From the sequence record MF459647.1: a stretch of DNA of 64,000 nucleotides; one strand, given 5' to 3'. Position numbers and translations under genes: made by a program. Below, one piece after another: positions 89-15,354 of this stretch (positions are counted from its first letter, which is position 1; each line of letters opens with the position of its first letter). Below the pieces are notes generated by a model. It ran no database searches. It was given only the letters and a program-made list of their open reading frames with translations, and was not told the origin of the DNA.

Positions 89-2230
89 ATGACAACTTTA
101 AGCCAAGTTGTACCTGGAAAGGTGAATAACCGGGGCGTGAACGATCGTTCAATTCCTGACTATTCTACCGACCCGGCTACAACCCCGCTTCACATGCCGG
201 TCATTCCGGTAGTGACGCCAAAGGGTGAATTTGGGACGCAGTGGATCAACACCGCTGACTTCCAAAATATTTACGGGAACATCTTCGACCACAAATCGCC
301 TTACTACAACCCTACCGCCGCGCTGATTCAGAACATGATCTCCGGTGGCCAGGCCAGTATCGGTGTCCGTCGTCTGTCAGTGAACAAACAGGTTGCGCGT
401 ATCGCGTTGTCCGCGTTTGTCACCAAGAAGAAAGTGACCAACTGGAAACGTAACTATAAAGGCATGTTCGAACTCGACAGCAATGGCGATAAAGTCAAAA
501 TTGGCGAGCTGGACGGTTTGGAAGTTTACGTGGGTGTGGACGCTGAAGCCGCAAGCAAAGAGCCAGGCGAACTGGCGATCCGTACTATTCCGGCTGCCGT
601 GGAAGGCGATAGCGATACCTACGTGTATCCGCTGTTTGAACTTCTGGCCGGCGTAGGCGACGTGTACAACCTGAACGGTGTACATCTGGGCGTGAAAGAT
701 TCTGCGCTGAACTGGAAAGGCATTGCTCAGTTCGTAGAAGCCACGGGTGTGTTCCCGTTCTTCATGCGTCAGTTCATCGACTCCGCTACCGGCGGTGCAC
801 GTAACTACGTGAAAGACAAAACCGGTAAAGACACCAGCCAGTTCACGCTGTTCGAAGTTGAGAACGATTCTGTCAAGTACAGTCTGCGTGAATGCATCGG
901 TGGTTACACCGGCGGTAACGTTAACCGTCCGACCACGCTGCGACCTGCGCCGTTTGGTGACGTGGTAACGTACAACGACAACATCGAAGAGCTGGCTCAG
1001 CTGATGTACGCCGTTGAGAAACCGAACAACACGGGTCTGGTCGACGGCTTCCAGCTGAACTACCGTCAGATGAACCCGTTCACCTGCACTAACCACCAGG
1101 GTGTGCCTTACTTTGCTATTCAGGGTAAAGGTATCTCCATGTGGGACATGTCCTACGCGATCAATGCGCAGTACGGCGTGTCTCCGTTCCTGGATAAAGA
1201 TGGTAAGCTGCCGAGCTATGCAACACCGGTAACTGTACGTGACCCGTTCAACGTACTGGGCAACGTTGAGTTCCCGCTGACCACCAAGCAGGGCTGGGAA
1301 ATCACCAACGGCCTGATGGAAGCTGATATCCAGGAGTTCGTCGACTCTCTCGAGCAGTCCAACTACGTGCGTAACCGTCAGTCCGTGTTCTGGGACGTCG
1401 GCTATACCTACGCGGTGAAAGAGAAGATGATGTCTATCCTGGGTGCACGTAAAGACGTCATGGTCTTTGCTTGTGCGACCATCTGGGAACCAGGCAAGAT
1501 GAACGACGTGGCTTCGGTATACGGTCGTCTGTCTCAGCTGACCGCTGCGCTGCGCATGTATCCGGAATCGGAATACTGGGGTACCCAGACCATGCGTGCG
1601 TCCGTGAACATCATCGAAGGTAAAATCATCGATGAAGCGACCGGTTGGTACTTCTCTGGTAACATCGATCTGGCCTACATGTTCGCCCGCTTTGCAGGTA
1701 ACGCAGCCGGTACTCTGTCTTCTGCCCGTTCTCCGGACCATGCTGACAACCGCCTGTTCACCACCATGCACAGCCCGAACATCGAATTCGAAGACGACGG
1801 TGTGTCTTCCGACAACTTCGACAACGGTGCGATCACCCTGCGTCCGTACGACATCTCTGGCGCGCTGTTCCGTCCGTGTCTCCCGACCGTGTACAAAGCC
1901 AGCATCGACTCTGTGCTCAAAGATGCGGTAACGGCCTTTGTGTGCGTGTGCCTGGAGAAGATTGGTCAGGACGAGTGGAACGTTGTGTGTGGTGACACCA
2001 CCATCACTTCGGAAAACTACGCGGCGCTGGTAAAAGACGGCATCGAGCGTAAATCTCGTGATCGTCTGGGTGGTATCGCGAAGTCTGTTCGCGTTGACGC
2101 TACCTACAACGAAAACCAGCCGGGTGGCCGTGCGGTGCTGAACACCGTGATTCATGCTTACTTCAACAAAGGTAAGTACATGATGAACCTGGATCTGTTC
2201 GCGTATAACGAACAGGACCTGGAAGCTTAA
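89..2230 (+). CDS. Contractile tail sheath protein (phiKZ gp29-like)
   Basis: 713 aa from the ATG at 89 (GAGG RBS upstream); strong high-expression codon bias; directly upstream of a ~300 aa tube-sized gene; size and position match the chimallivirus sheath-tube pair. Confidence 0.85.
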   Translation: MTTLSQVVPGKVNNRGVNDRSIPDYSTDPATTPLHMPVIPVVTPKGEFGTQWINTADFQNIYGNIFDHKSPYYNPTAALIQNMISGGQASIGVRRLSVNKQVARIALSAFVTKKKVTNWKRNYKGMFELDSNGDKVKIGELDGLEVYVGVDAEAASKEPGELAIRTIPAAVEGDSDTYVYPLFELLAGVGDVYNLNGVHLGVKDSALNWKGIAQFVEATGVFPFFMRQFIDSATGGARNYVKDKTGKDTSQFTLFEVENDSVKYSLRECIGGYTGGNVNRPTTLRPAPFGDVVTYNDNIEELAQLMYAVEKPNNTGLVDGFQLNYRQMNPFTCTNHQGVPYFAIQGKGISMWDMSYAINAQYGVSPFLDKDGKLPSYATPVTVRDPFNVLGNVEFPLTTKQGWEITNGLMEADIQEFVDSLEQSNYVRNRQSVFWDVGYTYAVKEKMMSILGARKDVMVFACATIWEPGKMNDVASVYGRLSQLTAALRMYPESEYWGTQTMRASVNIIEGKIIDEATGWYFSGNIDLAYMFARFAGNAAGTLSSARSPDHADNRLFTTMHSPNIEFEDDGVSSDNFDNGAITLRPYDISGALFRPCLPTVYKASIDSVLKDAVTAFVCVCLEKIGQDEWNVVCGDTTITSENYAALVKDGIERKSRDRLGGIAKSVRVDATYNENQPGGRAVLNTVIHAYFNKGKYMMNLDLFAYNEQDLEA

Positions 2231-2252
2231 TCCAACGATAAGGAAGAAGTAA

Positions 2253-3149
2253 ATGAGCACTAACTATCCTCATCGTGACTCGGAAACCACGTTATCCAAT
2301 TCCGATGCGTTTGTACAAGCGCTGGACCTGACCCGTCGTCCTGTGATTAACGCACAGAGCGGCGGGATGTACGGCTGGGCCGGTAACATTTTCGAATACG
2401 TTACCGCTCAACCGCACGTTCAGCAGCAGAGCTGGTGTATCATGCTTTCCACCCCGGCGTTCTTCAGTCGTCTGCCGGGCGGGACTGCACTGCACTCTCT
2501 GTGCAAATCGTTCTTTGAAAACCGTACCCAGAAATTCGAAGGTCTTTCTGACCGTACGGAAATCAACTTCGGTGAGATGAAGTGGACCGGTCACACTCTG
2601 TCCGTCCCGACGGGTGCTACCCGCACACTGGGTCAGATTAGCCACACGGCTTATGATACTGAAGGTGAACCGTTCACCAAGATGTTCAAAATCTGGTCTC
2701 AGTGGGGTCTGATGGATTCCGAGCTGATGAACGCCAAGCTGGTAACTCTCCCGGATCCGGGTGACATGCTGCTGGACGAAATCTCAGCGTCGGCGATTTA
2801 CTTCGAACCGACCAAGAACATGAAAGACATCGCGCACGCACAGCTGGCCGTCGGCATCATGCCACGTACTACTGTTCCGATCGAAATGCGTCGTGATAAA
2901 GATGAAGAAGGTCAGCTCCGTATTATCAATATGGAATTCACCGGCCTCATCGAGTCTGACACTCTGGCGGTTAAGAACATCGCGCGTGAAATGCTGAAAC
3001 TTCTGCCGCTGTACAACCCAGATGGTATCGCCGCGCCTGCAGGCTTCAAAGATCGCACCAGCACTCTGAAGTCCCTGAACAAGTCCGGCAACATCGAGCG
3101 TATGGCTCAGCAGTCGAAAACGGTAACCAATAGCCAGTACATGGGCTAA
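2253..3149 (+). CDS. Tail tube protein (phiKZ gp30-like)
   Basis: 298 aa immediately after the sheath, AGGAAG RBS, high-expression codons, followed by a terminator hairpin. Confidence 0.8.
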   Translation: MSTNYPHRDSETTLSNSDAFVQALDLTRRPVINAQSGGMYGWAGNIFEYVTAQPHVQQQSWCIMLSTPAFFSRLPGGTALHSLCKSFFENRTQKFEGLSDRTEINFGEMKWTGHTLSVPTGATRTLGQISHTAYDTEGEPFTKMFKIWSQWGLMDSELMNAKLVTLPDPGDMLLDEISASAIYFEPTKNMKDIAHAQLAVGIMPRTTVPIEMRRDKDEEGQLRIINMEFTGLIESDTLAVKNIAREMLKLLPLYNPDGIAAPAGFKDRTSTLKSLNKSGNIERMAQQSKTVTNSQYMG

Positions 3150-3167
3150 CGATTCCCGGTCATTCAC

Positions 3168-3198
3168 CCCTACTACTACCCGAGGGGTAGTAGTAGGG
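3168..3198 (+). terminator. Stem-loop terminator after the sheath-tube operon
   Basis: CCCTACTACTACCC-GAG-GGGTAGTAGTAGGG, 14-bp perfect stem. Confidence 0.75.
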
Positions 3199-3242
3199 TG
3201 TTTGATGCTATAGCCTTTTAATTTCACCAAAGGAGCCTCATT

Positions 3243-4088
3243 GTGAACTGCGTCGATTACGCTATTAACATGATTACCGGTTCCGATATCGATGAGTACT
3301 TATTGAAGTTGGCGTTTGAGAATCCCAATGCGAACTTTAATGGCAATTGGTACGGAATGTTGAGTAACACCACCGTCGAACAAGGCATACGCGAAAAGGT
3401 CATTCACCGCACGGTGTTGCCAGCATGTCAAGTGGGCGGGGGTAAAACCGAGTACGTTGATTTAACCGGAGCACGTATTCGTGACCTGGGCAATGGGTAC
3501 GTTGAAGTTAACGTGCCGGACAGTTTAACCGGGGGTCGCAAGATCATCACGGTGGAAGAGATTTATCTGGGGAGCATGTCGTCTGCGGCCGGTATGTTGT
3601 CCATGGGGATAAACGAAAACACCATGTGTGGTCAAGGTAGCCTGAATGACATGATGCAGGGTCTGGTCGATAACTTGTCCAGTAACCGTACCATGCCACC
3701 TACCTACAGCAACGTCCACATGACGGGCAACAACAGCTTCGTGATTGTGGGGATGAACTCTGGAACGTTTTCAATGACAGCGAAGTGCCTGCTGGAGTTT
3801 GATGACGGCATGACCAGCATTCACCCGAAAGCGTACGACACGTTTGCTGACCTCTGCCTGCTGGCAACCAAAGCCTATATCTACCGTACCTGTCGTCGTC
3901 CGACACAAGAAGCGGTGATTCGTGCTGGGGTAGCGCTGGAAAGTATCCGTGACGATATTGACGAATACCGGGATGCCTGGAAAGACTACCGTGAGTTCTT
4001 CGATACCACCTGGAAGAAAACCATGGCATACAGCGATCGTCAAGGCATGTATAACCGCATTGCCATGATGACTCCAACGCGTATGTAA
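3243..4088 (+). CDS. Conserved virion-type protein, possibly a neck/head-tail adaptor
   Basis: GTG start with GGAG RBS, 281 aa; the C-terminal helix pattern (IRAGVALESIRDDIDEY) is loosely reminiscent of T4 gp13-type adaptors; function is inference. Confidence 0.5.
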   Translation: MNCVDYAINMITGSDIDEYLLKLAFENPNANFNGNWYGMLSNTTVEQGIREKVIHRTVLPACQVGGGKTEYVDLTGARIRDLGNGYVEVNVPDSLTGGRKIITVEEIYLGSMSSAAGMLSMGINENTMCGQGSLNDMMQGLVDNLSSNRTMPPTYSNVHMTGNNSFVIVGMNSGTFSMTAKCLLEFDDGMTSIHPKAYDTFADLCLLATKAYIYRTCRRPTQEAVIRAGVALESIRDDIDEYRDAWKDYREFFDTTWKKTMAYSDRQGMYNRIAMMTPTRM

Positions 4089-7812: not shown

Positions 7813-8727
7813 TTATGCGTGGAATTTGTTGTACAGCTGATGGAACAAATTAACCTGCTTATTAAAGATGTTGTATTCAAACGTAGCGTACGCAATCTTT
7901 TTACGGGCCAAATCAGCATATTCCTTCATGCGTTCGCGATAATTCTCCGTCAAGTCAGATTGCTTTAACACGGCCTCTATATCACTAAGGTTGCGTTTCT
8001 GATCGTCAATGACCTTTTGAACGTTTTTCTCATATTCAGAAAGATCTTTCTGTGTGACATGATTAAGTTTGTTTAAGAAGGTTGCGATGCCGGCGTGATG
8101 GAAAATATGCGGCAGGTTCTTTTTAAGCTCTGGAAGAGCATGTTCTAAACGGGTTTGAAGATGAGCAAGCGGTGAAATATACTTGATGTCGTTTTTCTTC
8201 ATGTACTCCGTGTAGGACGTATTCAACTCTTCCAGCTTATTAAGCCAATCTTCAATTTGGTTCTGTTCGCCACGGTAAATTGCAGTACGGCGTTTACTGC
8301 CGTCTTTCTTTACGATTAACACTTCTTTTTCTTGCGCAGCAGCTTCCTGTTCTTTCTTAAGCTCAGGGTCTTTTGCAATGATGTCATCTGATTGCTTAAC
8401 TTCCTCAGTGACCTCCTTAGCTCGCTCTTCCGTCTTCGCACCTTTCTTACCGGTGAAGACTTCTTTCAGCTTAGTCCACAGCGCTTCCATGGCTGTTTTG
8501 ATCGCCTGGTAGACTTTCTGTGCACCTGACTTGATTGTATCAAGCACACCCTCATTACCGTGGTAGTTGGAAATCGTTCCGCCGTAGGACTGCACAACAG
8601 ACTGCAGGTACTGCTGAGCGTACGTTAAGGAGTAACGCTCGGTACCGTCCACCGTATCAATAATGCCGGTGAGTAGGGTCTCAGCGTGGTCGCTGTCCAT
8701 TTCTTCGTAAACACCATCGAGTTGCAT
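7813..8727 (-). CDS. Proteolytically processed head/ejection protein, paralog of 5444-6508
   Basis: GIIDTVDGTE...YHGNEGVLDTIKSG aligns with GIIDTVTGTE...YHGSEGVMDTIKGG; late-type TATG on the minus strand at 8751-8754. Confidence 0.7.
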   Translation of the reverse strand: MQLDGVYEEMDSDHAETLLTGIIDTVDGTERYSLTYAQQYLQSVVQSYGGTISNYHGNEGVLDTIKSGAQKVYQAIKTAMEALWTKLKEVFTGKKGAKTEERAKEVTEEVKQSDDIIAKDPELKKEQEAAAQEKEVLIVKKDGSKRRTAIYRGEQNQIEDWLNKLEELNTSYTEYMKKNDIKYISPLAHLQTRLEHALPELKKNLPHIFHHAGIATFLNKLNHVTQKDLSEYEKNVQKVIDDQKRNLSDIEAVLKQSDLTENYRERMKEYADLARKKIAYATFEYNIFNKQVNLFHQLYNKFHA

Positions 8728-8774
8728 GATTTTATCCTGTTAGTTTAGTTCATAAAATTTCGCGCATATCTCCC

Positions 8775-8805
8775 CCTCCTTGCCCCGTCTTAGGGGGCAA
8801 GGAGG
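8775..8805. terminator. GC-rich stem-loop in a divergent intergenic region
   Basis: CCTCCTTGCCCC-loop-GGGGCAAGGAGG, 12-bp stem; no clear U-tract. Confidence 0.5.
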
Positions 8806-9044
8806 TATTACAGTATGGGAGGGACGAGCGAGGAATTACTAAACTGTAATAGGTATAAAACCCAGTTAGTTATTTTTAGCAACTATAAGGTTATCTACTC
8901 TGTAGGCTCTTAACCATTAACTAAAGGTTTAACGTTAAGGCGGTTCAGTTCTTGCAGATTAAGTAATTTTCTACTACGTGGTAATATACATATACCGGCT
9001 GTAATGATTTACCACTATAGCCATATTATATTTTTATTTTCTAT

Positions 9045-10637: not shown

Positions 10638-10646
10638 TCCATAATG

Positions 10647-10674
10647 CTACTCCTACCCAAACGGGTAGGAGTAG
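10647..10674 (+). terminator. Intrinsic terminator
   Basis: CTACTCCTACCC-AAAC-GGGTAGGAGTAG followed by a T-rich tract. Confidence 0.8.
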
Positions 10675-10734
10675 TTTACTTATATATTTTATGTTTTTTG
10701 TAACCGTCTCGTAAGTTTTTACCGACGGATTAAT

Positions 10735-11070
10735 ATCCTATGTATTTTCATGCTTCGCTCTTGTCTGTTTTGTCACTTTTAATCTCTTAAAATTACTGTA
10801 CACCACGGTAATTTTGGGGGGTAGGGGGGCAAACCAGAACAGGGGCAAACCAGAACAGTTTCGAACAGTTTTGAAAGTTTTGGGGCCGCCGCCCCAGGGT
10901 TACATAAGTTAACTAAGAGAATAAGAATAATTATAATAAATACATTAAGAGAATAAGATCAGATCGGATCCGGGAAAACGTTAATTAGCTAACTATCCTT
11001 AGGGGTAGTTAGAGAGCAAGCTTAACTATAGCCAAGGGTAGAGAGACAGAGATCGGGAGAGAAGCATACA
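10735..11070. other. Candidate replication origin / cis-acting locus
   Basis: Within a ~590-bp non-coding gap: hairpin 10789-10815, G6-TA-G6 at 10816-10829, tandem repeats, AT-rich stretch 10905-10960 with TAAGAGAATAAGA twice, and a switch from pyrimidine-rich to purine-rich sequence. Confidence 0.45.
10826..10857 (+). repeat. Tandem direct repeat 2 x GGGGCAAACCAGAACA
   Basis: Exact 16-bp tandem duplication at 10826-10841 and 10842-10857; GAACAGTTT recurs immediately after. Confidence 0.9.
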
Positions 11071-11225
11071 GGGATCCTGTTATAGGGAATACCAGTAATT
11101 CTTCATAGTGAGCTTTATAGTTATAACCAGATAATATGTCTAGGGTAAAGTCCCCTGGATATACATTACTTAATAATCATAATAGTTCATTTAAGATACT
11201 GTTATTGTAAGGATATAGCAAGTCA

Positions 11226-12262: not shown

Positions 12263-12293
12263 TTCTTTTTGGTTCTACATTACTAGGGTGAAT
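12261..12293 (+). promoter_or_regulatory. Phage early-type promoter
   Basis: AATTCTTTTTGGTTCTACATTACTAGGGTGAAT; the GTG start called at 12288 lies inside this motif, so the real start is probably 12330. Confidence 0.7.
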
Positions 12294-12329
12294 ACTTCCC
12301 TGTTGTTAATTTATTTAAAGGATAACGTA

Positions 12330-13061
12330 ATGTCTACTTCCAATGCTAAAATGAAACCGTCTGTTCGCAAACTGTACGAAGATCGTCTGGTAAAAGCCCA
12401 GGACCATCTGGCAACATTAATGATTGCCCGGGATAATCTGCAGGCAGCTATTGAGCAGGCCCAGGACGACGTGGTAGGTTTGCAACGTACCCTGGCCGAC
12501 GATGAAGTGCTGGGTCGTCGCTCTTTTTATTTACCAACCGGTGAAGCAGCGACCAAACTTGCTCAGGGCATCGATGCCATACTGGCCGCGATCAATGCAG
12601 AGCAGCCTCAACCCGAGTCATGTGGAATGATTGCGGTGCCGTTCAGCTACATCAACGACATGTTGCAGCGCGCCGATGGTGAATCGGTTGAACAACCTGA
12701 GTTACCTGAGTCTGAGCAATTCATGACCATGACCGCACACGTTCCGTTTTATCGCGAACGTACCCAGAGTCACATGGATCGTTTAATGACGCAGCTTAGC
12801 CCAGCTAAACCCGCATCAGACACAGTATCCCGTACGGAACAAGCTCGAGCCATCGTGCAACAGCTGAATGTCGACGACATGTCCATTGCACATTATGTGA
12901 TTGAGCTGTTGGGCAACATGAAATACGACATTCCTCTTATCACGCCTGACAGAATCTGTGAACTGGCGGTGGAAAGGTTTGAAAATATTCATCGTCGTGA
13001 ACATTGCACGGTGATGCAAAACAACGGGGTCCGTTTCTACGTAATGACCGGTCGTAAATAA
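12330..13061 (+). CDS. Hypothetical early protein with coiled coil
   Basis: ATG at 12330 with AAGGA RBS; 243 aa. Confidence 0.7.
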   Translation: MSTSNAKMKPSVRKLYEDRLVKAQDHLATLMIARDNLQAAIEQAQDDVVGLQRTLADDEVLGRRSFYLPTGEAATKLAQGIDAILAAINAEQPQPESCGMIAVPFSYINDMLQRADGESVEQPELPESEQFMTMTAHVPFYRERTQSHMDRLMTQLSPAKPASDTVSRTEQARAIVQQLNVDDMSIAHYVIELLGNMKYDIPLITPDRICELAVERFENIHRREHCTVMQNNGVRFYVMTGRK

Positions 13062-13214
13062 ATAATTTGGCAGTGATATTATAACCCAGAAGCCACTGTG
13101 CATTATATGCTTAAGTGAGGACTGTGTGTTACTGGTACTTTCACTACCGGTAACGAATTGCCCGCCACTGCCATTTTAAAACCTATTTTGGGTATATGTT
13201 ATTGTTAGAAGATT

Positions 13215-13274
13215 TGAGAGTGCTGTTCACTTTTCCGTGGCACTCTCATTTTTATTTTTTTGTTTATTTTTTTT
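13215..13274 (+). terminator. Intrinsic terminator with long U-tract
   Basis: TGAGAGTGC...GCACTCTCA stem (13215-13248) followed by ~25 nt that are mostly T. Confidence 0.8.
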
Positions 13275-13294
13275 GTATGTGTATCTTATACGGA

Positions 13295-13465
13295 GAATAA
13301 TTACCTGAGTAGTTTGACTGCGAAAAGTTTCGGGTTCGCTCTGCAGCTGAATGTCAACAGCCAACACCTCAAACAAAATTTTCGTTATCATCATTTTAAA
13401 CGGATTTAGTCGCCACCACCGGGGAAGCCTGGGATTATCCGGTTAAACTACTCACATAATTCTTT
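13295..13465 (+). ncRNA. Putative ~170-nt structured non-coding RNA
   Basis: 13-bp closing stem 13306-13318/13442-13454, inner stems 13321-13330/13375-13384 and CGGAT/ATCCG; G-U pairs valid only on the + strand; TATG at 13276 upstream, T-tract downstream; no credible ORF. Confidence 0.6.
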
Positions 13466-13474
13466 TTAGTGTAT

Positions 13475-14254
13475 GTTATACACAACCGAACTGAAGCACC
13501 ATAGCAATCTGGACTCGTCGCCTAGAGCTGCGTTTGACTTTTTCTTTAAACCATGGCCTGGCTTGTTGAGTAACCAACGGCAGACTTTGGGTTGTCTTGT
13601 TCAGTCTATTGTGCTTCACCCCTTTACCGTTTTCAGCGCCTGATGTGATTCCAGAGTCGGGTTCCTGCTTTTGTTGAAAACGGTCCTTCTTGCCGGTGCT
13701 CTCTGCACTCACGGTGAAATCTCCATTTACCACGCCCCCTGATTAGGGTTTCGGAGAGTACTGGCAAACCTTTCCTCGGTATGTCGTTTACATGTCTGCG
13801 CTTAACCTTTGTGAGAGCGCGGGGCGCATGATTCGGCAACCCTGGTTACGAGCACTTTATATCTTTCTGCTCACAATCCCTCCCTCAGGCACATGGCCGG
13901 GAAACGGAGGGTCCATCTGATGTGCAACGGAGACGGGTCTGTTGAACTTGCGCGAAAAGATACGGGCTGCCTTTTAATGTGTAATCCCTCAAAGCGAATG
14001 TGGGAGATAGCATCCAGACCCAAAGGCGGTCAAGTTGTTAAAACAAGTAGCCCGAGAATGAGAGGGCGAACGGAGTATGCAGCCTGTTGGCTAGCTCGGG
14101 AATTGAGTCGACCGATACCCGAATTGGCCAATGGAGTGTTTACTTCAGACGGTGACACTAGTGGAAGCATCAGTCGGTGATGCAACTGCAGCGGAAAACA
14201 GACAAAGCTTATTTTTCTATCCTTTAGTTACTCTTGGCCTAGGCCAAGAGTAAC
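13475..14254 (+). ncRNA. Putative large (~740-780 nt) structured non-coding RNA
   Basis: Consecutive long stems 13492-13504/13606-13618, 13626-13636/13674-13684, 13690-13703/13754-13767 plus many hairpins; GC-rich island between AT-rich flanks; TATG at 13472; ends at the palindromic terminator 14227-14254. Confidence 0.6.
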
Positions 14255-14260
14255 ATTTTT
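14227..14260 (+). terminator. Perfect 28-bp palindrome terminator
   Basis: GTTACTCTTGGCCT|AGGCCAAGAGTAAC followed by ATTTTT. Confidence 0.8.
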
Positions 14261-14318
14261 CTATGTTTGCTATTTTTATTTTTTCACTGATTGGCTAAGT
14301 ATATTAGCGGGACCCTAA

Positions 14319-14349
14319 AGATTTTTACCTCTATATTACCAGGGTGTAT
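14319..14349 (+). promoter_or_regulatory. Phage early-type promoter of phuZ
   Basis: ATTTTTACCTCTATATTACCAGGGTGTAT; contains the TATATTAC core known from phiKZ early promoters. Confidence 0.8.
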
Positions 14350-14388
14350 AGGCAACTGCAATTAATCCATTTAATCAAGGAGAAGTAC

Positions 14389-15354
14389 ATGTCTGAATTA
14401 CAATACTACCTGTGTGGCGGCGCTGGCATCTCTATCGGTGTGGCTCTGAAACAACAGACCAACACGGCGGCTAACCGCACAGCTAAGATGGTCGGCATCG
14501 ACAGCTCTGACCGCAACGACTCTGACGGCCTCTTCCCGGTAGTACGTATGGAAGGCACGCGCGGTTCTGGTAAAGTGAAATCCACCAACGCCGAACCGAT
14601 GAAACCGTTCCTGGCAGAAGTGCTGACCCAACACAAACCGGCCAGCTTCAACATCATCGTCTGTAACGCCGCTGGCGGTACCGGTTCCCTGATGGCAACC
14701 TACCTGCTGCAGAAACTCGTCGCTGCAGGTAAAGTGGTGTTCCTCTGCCTGGCGTCTGACGAGACCAGTCAGAAAGAGTTCGAGAACGTCATCTCCACCA
14801 AACGTTCTTTCGCGGCCCAGACCGAGAAAAACCAACTCGACGTGCCGGTTCCGTATCTGGACATTGTTCAGACTCCGGACATGACCCGTGGTGATGCTAA
14901 CCGCCGTATCGTTAATCAGCTTGATCTGCTGAGCCTGTTCGCAACCGAAACCAATGAAGAAGTGGACTACCAAGACATCCTGTCTATGGTCCGCTACTCC
15001 AAAACCTGTAACGTTGCGCCGGCGCTGAGCAAAATCACTTTCCACGATCAGGAAACGGCCCGCTCCTATACTGGTAAAGTACCGGTAGCAGTGTGCTCGC
15101 TGTTTGATAACCGCGATGCGGTAGCGCCGTTGTTCGAAGGTTGTGTATACCGTGCAACCGGTGTGTTCAACAAATCCAACAACCCGCCGGCTGATCTGAA
15201 AGAGATTCACATGGTCTTTGACCACGGTGAAGCAATTGACGAACTGAAGGAGCGTATGGAATTGCTGAACGACCGCAAAATCGTGACAGCCAACAAGTAC
15301 TCTGAAGTTGACAAAGTCAGCGACGGTGCCGACGATTCCGGCGTGTTCTACTAA
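14389..15354 (+). CDS. phuZ: PhuZ phage tubulin
   Basis: GGAGISIG (T1), GSGK (T3), AAGGTGS (tubulin signature) and acidic C-terminus DDSGVFY; ATG at 14389 with AAGGAG RBS. Confidence 0.92.
   Translation: MSELQYYLCGGAGISIGVALKQQTNTAANRTAKMVGIDSSDRNDSDGLFPVVRMEGTRGSGKVKSTNAEPMKPFLAEVLTQHKPASFNIIVCNAAGGTGSLMATYLLQKLVAAGKVVFLCLASDETSQKEFENVISTKRSFAAQTEKNQLDVPVPYLDIVQTPDMTRGDANRRIVNQLDLLSLFATETNEEVDYQDILSMVRYSKTCNVAPALSKITFHDQETARSYTGKVPVAVCSLFDNRDAVAPLFEGCVYRATGVFNKSNNPPADLKEIHMVFDHGEAIDELKERMELLNDRKIVTANKYSEVDKVSDGADDSGVFY

Follow-up and report, generated by a model that had tools for sequence, protein, structure and literature searches.

The window analysed here, a stretch of 64,000 nucleotides (nt), is the first 64 kb of the genome of Erwinia phage vB_EamM_Joad (MF459647, genus Risingsunvirus), which blastn recovered with 100% identity over the query; RisingSun was 99.4% identical to the window. 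Joad is a nucleus-forming jumbo phage related to EL. Positions 13475–14254 of the window, which very probably hold a genuine gene for a structured non-coding RNA (ncRNA) of a new family, lie inside a gap of ~1.3 kb (13062–14388) that separates gp14 (12288–13061) from the tubulin gene phuZ (gp17, 14389–15354). A preliminary description of this DNA had proposed a large structured + strand ncRNA upstream of phuZ, situated in a GC-rich and gene-free island. The core of this proposal is supported by covariation, by the lack of a conserved open reading frame (ORF) and by comparison with shuffled sequences. The term GC-rich holds against the AT-rich flanks only, as the locus has a GC content of ~0.50 and the flanks of 0.34–0.41; it does not hold against the genome average of 48.3% (Table 1, PMC6034870). 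The genome of Joad was reported to be devoid of tRNAs (PMC6034870).

A blastn search of the locus against 50,697 phage records gave matches in Joad and RisingSun only. Intermediate relatives were found in public assemblies by a search with the PhuZ protein, at identities of 81, 77, 75, 72, 57, 50 and 49%. Their contigs (L006/L007, L008, L009/L010, L011/L012, L013, L014/L015 and L016) make up seven lineages beyond Joad, and all seven keep, immediately before phuZ, a gap of ~1.0–1.3 kb for which the gene callers returned no gene in any lineage. The gene on the other side of the gap varies by lineage and is without a Pfam domain; a protein partner sought next to the RNA was not found there, as this upstream gene is not one family across the lineages and carries no domains. 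Near phuZ of more distant relatives (EL, an EL-like contig, FishSpeaker and L058–L061) the element is not present; in the first three of these, phuZ is instead preceded by short gaps or by a gene for an HslV-like peptidase. In a tree of PhuZ, the genomes lacking the RNA form one supported clade and the three RNA-bearing lineages an unresolved polytomy outside it. Sequence comparison shows that three lineages of nucleus-forming jumbo phages related to EL have kept the RNA locus directly upstream of phuZ. A pseudogene of the HslV-like peptidase that precedes phuZ in EL and FishSpeaker was also considered for the Joad gap and rejected, since tblastn detected no trace of it.

The gap is not empty in the databases. 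In both Joad and RisingSun, GenBank and RefSeq list gp15 (13227–13394) and gp16 (13476–13733) as small hypothetical proteins on the minus strand, overlapping the RNA locus. Relatives other than RisingSun have no counterpart of gp16, and full-length counterparts of gp15, gp16 and a further ORF at 13893–14180 were found nowhere outside RisingSun among the relatives. Because conserved counterparts are lacking, gp15 and gp16 are very probably mis-annotations and not genes, and the gap can be called gene-free in the sense that it contains no conserved ORF. The ORF at 13893–14180, whose conservation at the amino-acid level the preliminary description had named as a point that would speak against an RNA, is already shortened and frameshifted by a 1-nt indel in RisingSun. 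It retains 53 codons in L011 and only a C-terminal piece in L006 and is absent in the other relatives, so that it was met as a frameshifted, truncated, split or absent frame. The indels in the alignments of the gap have lengths that are not multiples of three.

What the alignments of the gap do conserve is pairing. Short invariant blocks stand between helices in which the sequence changes and the pairing is kept. In the 3' core (Joad 13834–14150, eight lineages), RNAalifold predicted 61 pairs, 41 of them with compensatory double changes, at a column-shuffle z of −21. The 5' arm (five lineages) gave 82 pairs, of which 37 showed compensatory double changes (z = −18.9), and an upstream module, D0, gave 44 pairs in five sequences with 13 compensatory ones (z = −10.6). 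Three 345-column windows from the phuZ coding sequence of the same eight genomes served as controls and reached z values of −0.3 to −2.7 with compensatory counts not above those of shuffles. The pairing was also registered precisely on the alignments of two covariance models, R1 (3' subdomain) and R2 (independent of it): standard pairs filled 93.6% and 94.3% of the cells, compared to 35–45% when the partners were slid by 1–3 columns, and 21/30 and 16/20 pairs had changed on both sides, compared to 3–7 with slid partners. None of 500 shuffles (0/500) reached these values. At the same time, the 5' arm is only 42–56% identical to Joad in L006, L008 and L009, where phuZ is 75–79% identical, and the core is 38–42% identical in the distant lineages, where phuZ is 56–62% identical. 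The sequence therefore drifts faster than phuZ and the pairs are nevertheless kept, which argues that selection acts on the fold. The covariation that the preliminary description had proposed to test in homologues upstream of phuZ is abundant.

The fold belongs to the + strand. Consensus folding energies on the + and − strand were −100 and −69 for the core and −152 and −125 for the 5' arm, and G-U pairs were about twice as frequent on the + strand (98 vs 53 in the core, 70 vs 29 in the arm), in agreement with the bias first noticed in the single sequence. For D0, the strand preference is weak (−65.8 vs −59.6). Compensated pairs beyond those of controls, combined with strand specificity, are the general mark of a structured ncRNA, and both were observed at this locus.

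Folding of the Joad sequence by itself gave −275.6 kcal/mol for the + strand of 13475–14254 (z = −4.27 with 20 dinucleotide shuffles) and −229.3 kcal/mol for the − strand (z = +0.27), so that the + strand folds better than shuffled controls, as had been anticipated. The background of the genome for long windows was taken from minimum free energy versus GC content in 164 windows of 780 nt. Among these, the locus ranked 5th in GC-corrected + strand stability (−2.1 standard deviations, SD) and likewise 5th in strand asymmetry. A sliding scan of z-scores in 200-nt windows did not single out the locus, with a genome-wide mean z of already ~−1. As the locus is only moderately unusual within its own genome, thermodynamics is supportive and not decisive; the decisive support for the predicted RNA is comparative.

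Known families do not account for the element. With cmscan and Rfam 15 (4227 families), the window had 0 matches at the gathering score, positions 13000–14500 had 0 matches even at E <= 10, and the loci of the seven relatives had none except for tRNAs in an unrelated clade. GOLLD, ROOL and OLE were thus not recognised by their covariance models. This is in line with the suggestion, made at the outset, of a possibly new class. In the literature searched, no account was found of an RNA upstream of phuZ or of a large structured RNA in nucleus-forming phages, with the proviso that journals outside its coverage may hold one.

The predicted RNA is modular, with a fast-evolving 5' arm domain, of which only the base pairing is conserved, and a conserved 3' core (13847–14150). 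The 5' arm domain (13485–13780, + strand as for all parts given below) is closed by ACCGA (13485–13489) with TCGGT (13776–13780) and contains three main stems: P1 (13492–13504/13606–13618), P2 (13626–13636/13674–13684) and P3 (13690–13703/13754–13767). All three had been drawn in the preliminary description, were returned by RNAalifold on five sequences and are kept in the relatives via compensatory changes. A variable linker (13781–13846) follows, holding the putative GCGCT/AGCGC hairpin (13798–13802/13816–13820), and is partly deleted in L006 and L008. Upstream of the arm lies D0 (13293–13465) with two long closing stems (13293–13303/~13458–13465 and 13307–13318/13441–13453) and conserved unpaired segments, CCTCAAAC and ATCATCATTTTAAACGGATTT, in its interior. 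D0 may be an initial domain of the RNA or else a small RNA in its own right.

The 3' core is held together by two pseudoknots, formed by the loop of hairpin Ha with 13956–13962 and by the loop of hairpin Hb with 14015–14021, amid the invariant junctions TGATG, CAAGTTGT, GCAGCCT and AATGG. They were scored with custom scripts, in which a scan listed stacked column pairs kept in all lineages and returned the nested helices as well as the first pseudoknot. Ha (13850–13872) has a covarying stem, GAGC/GCTC in Joad with the variants AAGC/GCTT, GAAC/GTTC, GGAC/GTCC and AGGC/GCCT, and a conserved pyrimidine-rich loop, CTTTATATCTTTC. From this loop, TATCTTT (13860–13866) pairs with AAAGATA (13956–13962) in the first pseudoknot, PK1, with seven stacked pairs in 8/8 sequences; three positions change on both sides, namely, in L013 (TATCCTT/AAGGATA), L014 (GACCTTT/AAAGGTC) and L016 (TACCTTT/AAAGGTA). 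Hb (13922–13953) is built from GTGCAA (13922–13927) and TTGCGC (13948–13953), shows double changes in 6/8 pairs and is directly preceded on its 5' side by the invariant TGATG (13918–13922). In the second pseudoknot, PK2, its apical GGGTCTG (13935–13941) pairs with CAGACCC (14015–14021) and links the apex of Hb to the interior of helix Hc. This pairing, formerly noted as one of two crossing pairings, proved to be a covarying pseudoknot and the best complement in 7/8 sequences, with the variants GGGCTTG/CAAGCCC in L008, TGGGC/GCCCA in L013 and TGGTC/GACCA in L016. For L014, the top-scoring duplex is an alternative, CUGGUCG/CGGUCAG, and TGGTC/GACCA was read there by eye. Inside helix Hc (13965–13973/14023–14031) lie the 3' strand of PK2 and inner hairpins that are variable; the nine pairs of Hc include seven with double changes, and 98.6% of the cells are paired. 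The other crossing pairing, AACTTG/CAAGTT, has to be abandoned: junction CAAGTTGT (14031–14038) is unchanged in 8/8 lineages, the proposed partner is not conserved and a covarying partner was not found among them.

Within the 3' subdomain (14050–14139), the part modelled by R1 with 30 pairs and 21 double changes, hairpin He (14050–14053/14064–14067) is followed by the invariant GCAGCCT (14079–14085) and by the long helix Hf, which is closed by CTGTT (14084–14088) with AATGG (14130–14134). Hf carries hairpin Hd with three stem segments (14089–14094/14124–14129, 14096–14100/14118–14122 and 14102–14105/14113–14116) and the apical loop AGTCGAC (14106–14112). Further hairpins of the preliminary description fared differently. 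CCCTCC/GGAGGG covaries in the alignment as read by eye, and so does GCATCA/TGATGC, which forms a tail hairpin (14167–14183) with stem variants such as GTGTCA/TGGCAC-like, TGTCA/TGACA and AGCAT/ATGCT around a conserved loop GTCGG (14173–14177). CCCGAG/CTCGGG is not supported; the covariation points to a pair of local hairpins in its place, GCCC/GGGC and UCGGG/CCCGA.

The locus is bounded by terminators on both sides. An intrinsic terminator of gp14 (13216–13262), with the stem GAGAGTGC (13216–13223)/GCACTCTC (13240–13247) and a subsequent T-rich run, sets the upstream limit, and both its stem and its T run are conserved, with changes in the stem, in L006, L008, L009 and L011. At the other end, the palindromic terminator that had been described was found by a terminator scan at 14227–14262, consisting of a 12-bp stem with a 4-nt loop (14227–14254) and then ATTTTTCT. 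The stem covaries in the relatives (CTCTTGGCC, CTCACC, CTCTGTCC and CTCCACCC, each with matching 3' arms), and its flanks TTTAGTTAC and GTAAC.TTTTT are kept. The 3' end of the predicted RNA is thereby well defined at 14254. As to its 5' end, a structural unit begins where the preliminary description had put the start, as the 5' arm is closed by ACCGA/TCGGT at 13485; conserved structure in the form of D0 also reaches upstream of 13475 to ~13283, after the gp14 terminator. The RNA would start either near 13475 or, with D0, near 13285, which corresponds to a length of ~780 to 970 nt. Between Joad and RisingSun, the protein of gp14 is only 69% identical, whereas the RNA locus (13260–14400) differs by one indel and one substitution, a sharp transition from variable gene to frozen RNA.

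A decamer, TATCTTATAC (13282–13291), is a candidate promoter or 5'-end element, and a GTATCTTAT-like motif was found at the opening of the non-coding gap in 8/8 lineages. Its second copy, TATGTTATAC (13472–13481), contains the TATG at which the preliminary description had placed the start, is less conserved than the first and could be a second promoter or a linker. In the 64-kb window, the consensus TATNTTATAM occurs at 13282 and 13472 only; with just these two occurrences, both in the RNA locus, it can be assigned to no promoter class. Between the RNA terminator and the start of phuZ (14389), promoter-like elements (GTATATTAG and CTATATTACCAGGGTGTATAGG, 14296–14350) are conserved in the relatives. 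A motif resembling CTAyATTAyyAGGGTGwAT precedes gp10, gp12, gp14, phuZ, gp28 and gp39 (9126, 11226, 12288, 14389, 21816 and 31366) and probably represents the early promoters of this group of phages. The position of such a conserved motif after the RNA terminator argues that phuZ is transcribed from its own promoter. The RNA is called stand-alone here because of the flanking terminators and the conserved promoter-like element before phuZ.

Taken as a whole, the locus is best explained by a stand-alone gene for a structured + strand RNA that acts in trans and possibly associates with itself, a reading that is held to be probable, if with clear reservations. How such an RNA would work can be proposed only tentatively. 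It may act in trans as a folded particle, and neither by coding nor by simple antisense pairing. The apical loop of Hd would join two or more copies of the RNA by a symmetric kissing loop, and the outcome would be an RNA-only or RNA–protein assembly in the manner of OLE, ROOL and GOLLD. The Hd loop is the candidate on account of its palindrome, GTCGAC (14107–14112), which is present in all five Joad-clade sequences. In L014 and L016, ACTCGAGT (ACUCGAGU) stands in its place, with the outer pair swapped and the self-complementarity kept, so that between clades one palindrome, GUCGAC, is exchanged for another, (A)CUCGAG(U). It is the sole position in the locus with a conserved palindromic hexamer. 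Palindrome switching in loops has served as an argument that OLE and GOLLD form symmetric kissing loops between molecules, as seen by cryo-electron microscopy (PMC12286853). A still wider proposal, slightly more doubtful than the mechanism itself, would make the Joad RNA the first representative of a new RNA class, ornate and self-assembling, that is specific to jumbo phages forming a nucleus (chimallin/PhuZ). Such a class would be kept directly upstream of phuZ, may survive, much diverged and expanded, in further clades, the Miami-like phages of Klebsiella among them, and would be tied to the compartmentalised infection cycle and not to regulation by base pairing.

Several observations weigh against this interpretation. 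The RNA is known here from the DNA sequence alone, and its thermodynamic signal is only ~2 SD from the genome background. The argument from the palindrome draws on two independent states, and L013 keeps only CCGG. An intramolecular partner is also at hand, since the tail-hairpin loop GUCGG fits the Hd loop about equally well in the Joad clade and in L013 (AUCCGGUA x UGUCGGGU); GUCGAC x GUCGGU was listed by the scan for L011 only and was read by eye in the other Joad-clade sequences. Typical GOLLD and ROOL loci have tRNA neighbours and this one does not, its strict adjacency to phuZ could mean a role in cis, and the family is rare, being absent from the contigs of JGI metagenomes and GTDB genomes and limited to RisingSun in IMG/VR.

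Other functions were weighed on the same evidence. The invariant junctions around the two covarying pseudoknots (TGATG, CAAGTTGT, GCAGCCT and AATGG) are unexplained by Watson-Crick pairing, and such conservation is typical of active sites or of pockets for ligands or proteins. The doubly pseudoknotted core could accordingly be a ribozyme or the RNA subunit of an RNA–protein enzyme or guide complex, to which the 5' arms would be peripheral scaffolding. This is considered unlikely, as no ribozyme, intron, RNase P or guide RNA of Rfam matched even at E <= 10 and no nuclease, reverse transcriptase or other obvious partner is encoded alongside, the upstream gene being variable and free of Pfam domains. 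Somewhat less likely again is a protein sponge or decoy, whose hairpin loops would titrate a host or phage RNA-binding protein such as a CsrA/RsmA-type regulator, a ribonuclease or a defence sensor. Joad does have several ACGGAG/ATGGAG motifs and a GAGTCG-type motif in two loops (14106–14112 and 14173–14177), the latter also in a possible relative in phage Miami, and a large RNA with a strong terminator would suit accumulation. However, the GGA-containing motifs are not kept in L013, L014 and L016, as judged by eye on the alignment and not by formal count, so that GGA loop motifs conserved across homologues, as in RNAs of the CsrB/RsmB type, were not found in this alignment. Moreover, it is the loop motifs that vary between clades and the pseudoknotted architecture that is conserved, and a sponge would have no need of two pseudoknots.

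The invariable placement of the RNA immediately before phuZ in all carrier genomes, with a variable gene on its other side, could also reflect a cis-acting leader in which transcripts stop at 14254 or read through and the fold tunes the expression of phuZ. The strong covarying terminator, followed by conserved promoter-like elements as they occur before other early genes, makes this improbable. In addition, relatives without the RNA (EL, L017, L058–L061 and FishSpeaker) have phuZ behind short gaps or another gene, and known attenuators come nowhere near ~800 nt and two pseudoknots. Least credible by far is the absence of any RNA gene, with the locus either coding for protein (gp15, gp16 or the ORF 13893–14180) or acting at the level of the DNA, for example, as an origin or as the decayed remains of a mobile element. 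The GenBank entries for gp15 and gp16 and a purine/pyrimidine skew that flips near 13850, as expected for two diverging genes, would fit with this. Yet the ORFs are unconserved, indels are not in multiples of three and no genes are called in the relatives; the covariation keeps G-U pairs, which are A-C mismatches on the opposite strand, and the HslV-like gene found before phuZ in EL and FishSpeaker has left no remnant. The stand-alone, trans-acting RNA is retained as the preferred reading.

The reach of the family was explored with patterns and covariance models. A search for the three-motif pattern CAAGTTGT..GCAGCCTRYT..ARTGGR was conducted in IMG/VR, JGI metagenomes and GTDB genomes. It retrieved only RisingSun in IMG/VR, and the matches in JGI metagenomes (38) and GTDB genomes (14) were rejected as chance, with <=20 bits against R1 and none against R2. 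The two models were also run on other PhuZ loci. In EL, the EL-like contig, FishSpeaker, L058–L061, Miami and phiKT1019, R1 and R2 gave no match except for a weak one of R1 in Miami, and R1 alone gave none in D3, AH04 and five IMG/VR contigs.

In Klebsiella phage Miami (L062), ~3.4 kb upstream of phuZ (600–4000) are annotated with only tiny ORFs on both strands. A 770-nt stretch therein (2700–3470) reaches folding z-scores of −4.7 (+ strand) and −4.1 (− strand). The weak R1 match (16.4 bits) lies at 3409–3468 and has the same Hf/Hd architecture, a weaker second module was seen at 3097–3226, and R2 found no match in Miami. The stretch may be a diverged and expanded relative of the Joad RNA. Five IMG/VR contigs (L081–L085) represent a further PhuZ clade (36–39% identical) with ~1.9 kb lacking conserved long ORFs upstream of phuZ (1100–3000). 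L081 and L083 have tRNA-Asn and tRNA-Ser there, followed by ~1.5 kb of gene-poor sequence, and the alifold z of this gap in L081–L085 is more negative on the + strand. In another phage, Pseudomonas phage vB_PQ1 (PQ516283.1), the match to phuZ is split in two by an annotated 'hypothetical protein', and the gene may carry an intron or insertion.

Two other places in the window stood out. Between gp11 and gp12, a second conserved gene-free gap (10638–11225) is also found in L006, L008, L009 and L011. It contains a tandem direct repeat, with two copies of GGGGCAAACCAGAACAG and then TTTCGAACAG, whose copies change in concert between phages. Also present are a hairpin, GGGGCCGCCGCCCC, and an AT-rich segment in which GATC sites occur. 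The gap has alifold z-scores of −15 (+ strand) and −9 (− strand) and the highest strand asymmetry of folding energy in the window. It looks like an array of iterons (an origin or regulator site) or a second ncRNA. The most extreme folding z-scores of the window, −8.0 and −5.8 on the two strands, were measured in the intergenic region of the divergent genes gp8 and gp9 (8701–8900), which suggests a long inverted repeat.

Large RNAs with elaborate folds are uncommon in bacteria and phages, and every class found to date has led to new biology: OLE is part of a membrane RNA–protein complex, HEARO is a guide RNA, and ROOL and GOLLD form RNA cages. To our knowledge, no large ornate RNA class has been described in nucleus-forming jumbo phages, in which transcription apart from translation raises questions of RNA traffic. 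The phage (Joad or RisingSun) and its host (Erwinia amylovora) are a pair that is in culture and sequenced, and the RNA has a fold supported by covariation, with two pseudoknots, and a testable dimerisation loop, which makes deletion, localisation, identification of partners and cryo-electron microscopy feasible. A more immediate consequence concerns the annotation of Joad and RisingSun, where gp15 and gp16 are to be corrected as very probably not being genes.

Among known systems, phage group I self-splicing introns have a similar size, a pseudoknotted conserved core and variable peripheral arms, and they are known in jumbo phages (review PMC13282480). Unlike these, the Joad RNA interrupts no gene and is framed by the gp14 terminator and a terminator of its own. 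A group I intron was rejected on the basis that Intron_gpI of Rfam was not matched at E <= 10, that no ORF for a homing endonuclease is present and that no split gene surrounds the locus.

GOLLD resembles the Joad RNA in being encoded by phages, in its length of ~800 nt and in a 3' region that is universally conserved with a less conserved 5' part (PMC12286853). It also has pseudoknot and kissing-loop contacts, with a symmetric kissing loop deduced from palindrome-switching loops (PMC12286853). The architecture of the Joad RNA parallels it with variable paired arms, a conserved core, its own terminator and no coding capacity. In contrast to this likeness, the Rfam model of GOLLD does not match and the secondary structure is different. 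GOLLD is usually found beside tRNA genes, and the tRNA-adjacent setting of GOLLD and ROOL is not seen here: ARAGORN detected no tRNA or tmRNA in 12900–14500 of Joad and no tRNA in the loci of L013, L014 and L016. Unlike GOLLD, the Joad RNA is found among the early genes on the replication side of the genome of a nucleus-forming jumbo phage, and its oligomerisation is putative. ROOL (rumen-originating, ornate, large) is likewise a large ornate RNA of phages and prophages and assembles without protein via kissing loops (PMC12286853). It differs in that its Rfam model does not match and in its hosts, the carriers here being Enterobacteria-type jumbo phages; the Joad RNA is known from its sequence only, with a far narrower known distribution of ~10 genomes.

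OLE occurs in the chromosomes of extremophilic Firmicutes and works with dedicated membrane protein partners. The Joad RNA differs from it in its phage location, in the lack of an Rfam match and in having no such protein partners. Closest to the proposal made here is the way in which OLE, as a large ornate RNA, forms a symmetric homodimer that is held together partly by a palindromic kissing loop covarying between palindromes (PMC12286853). By analogy, a dimer would be the simplest reading of the single palindromic loop in the Joad RNA.

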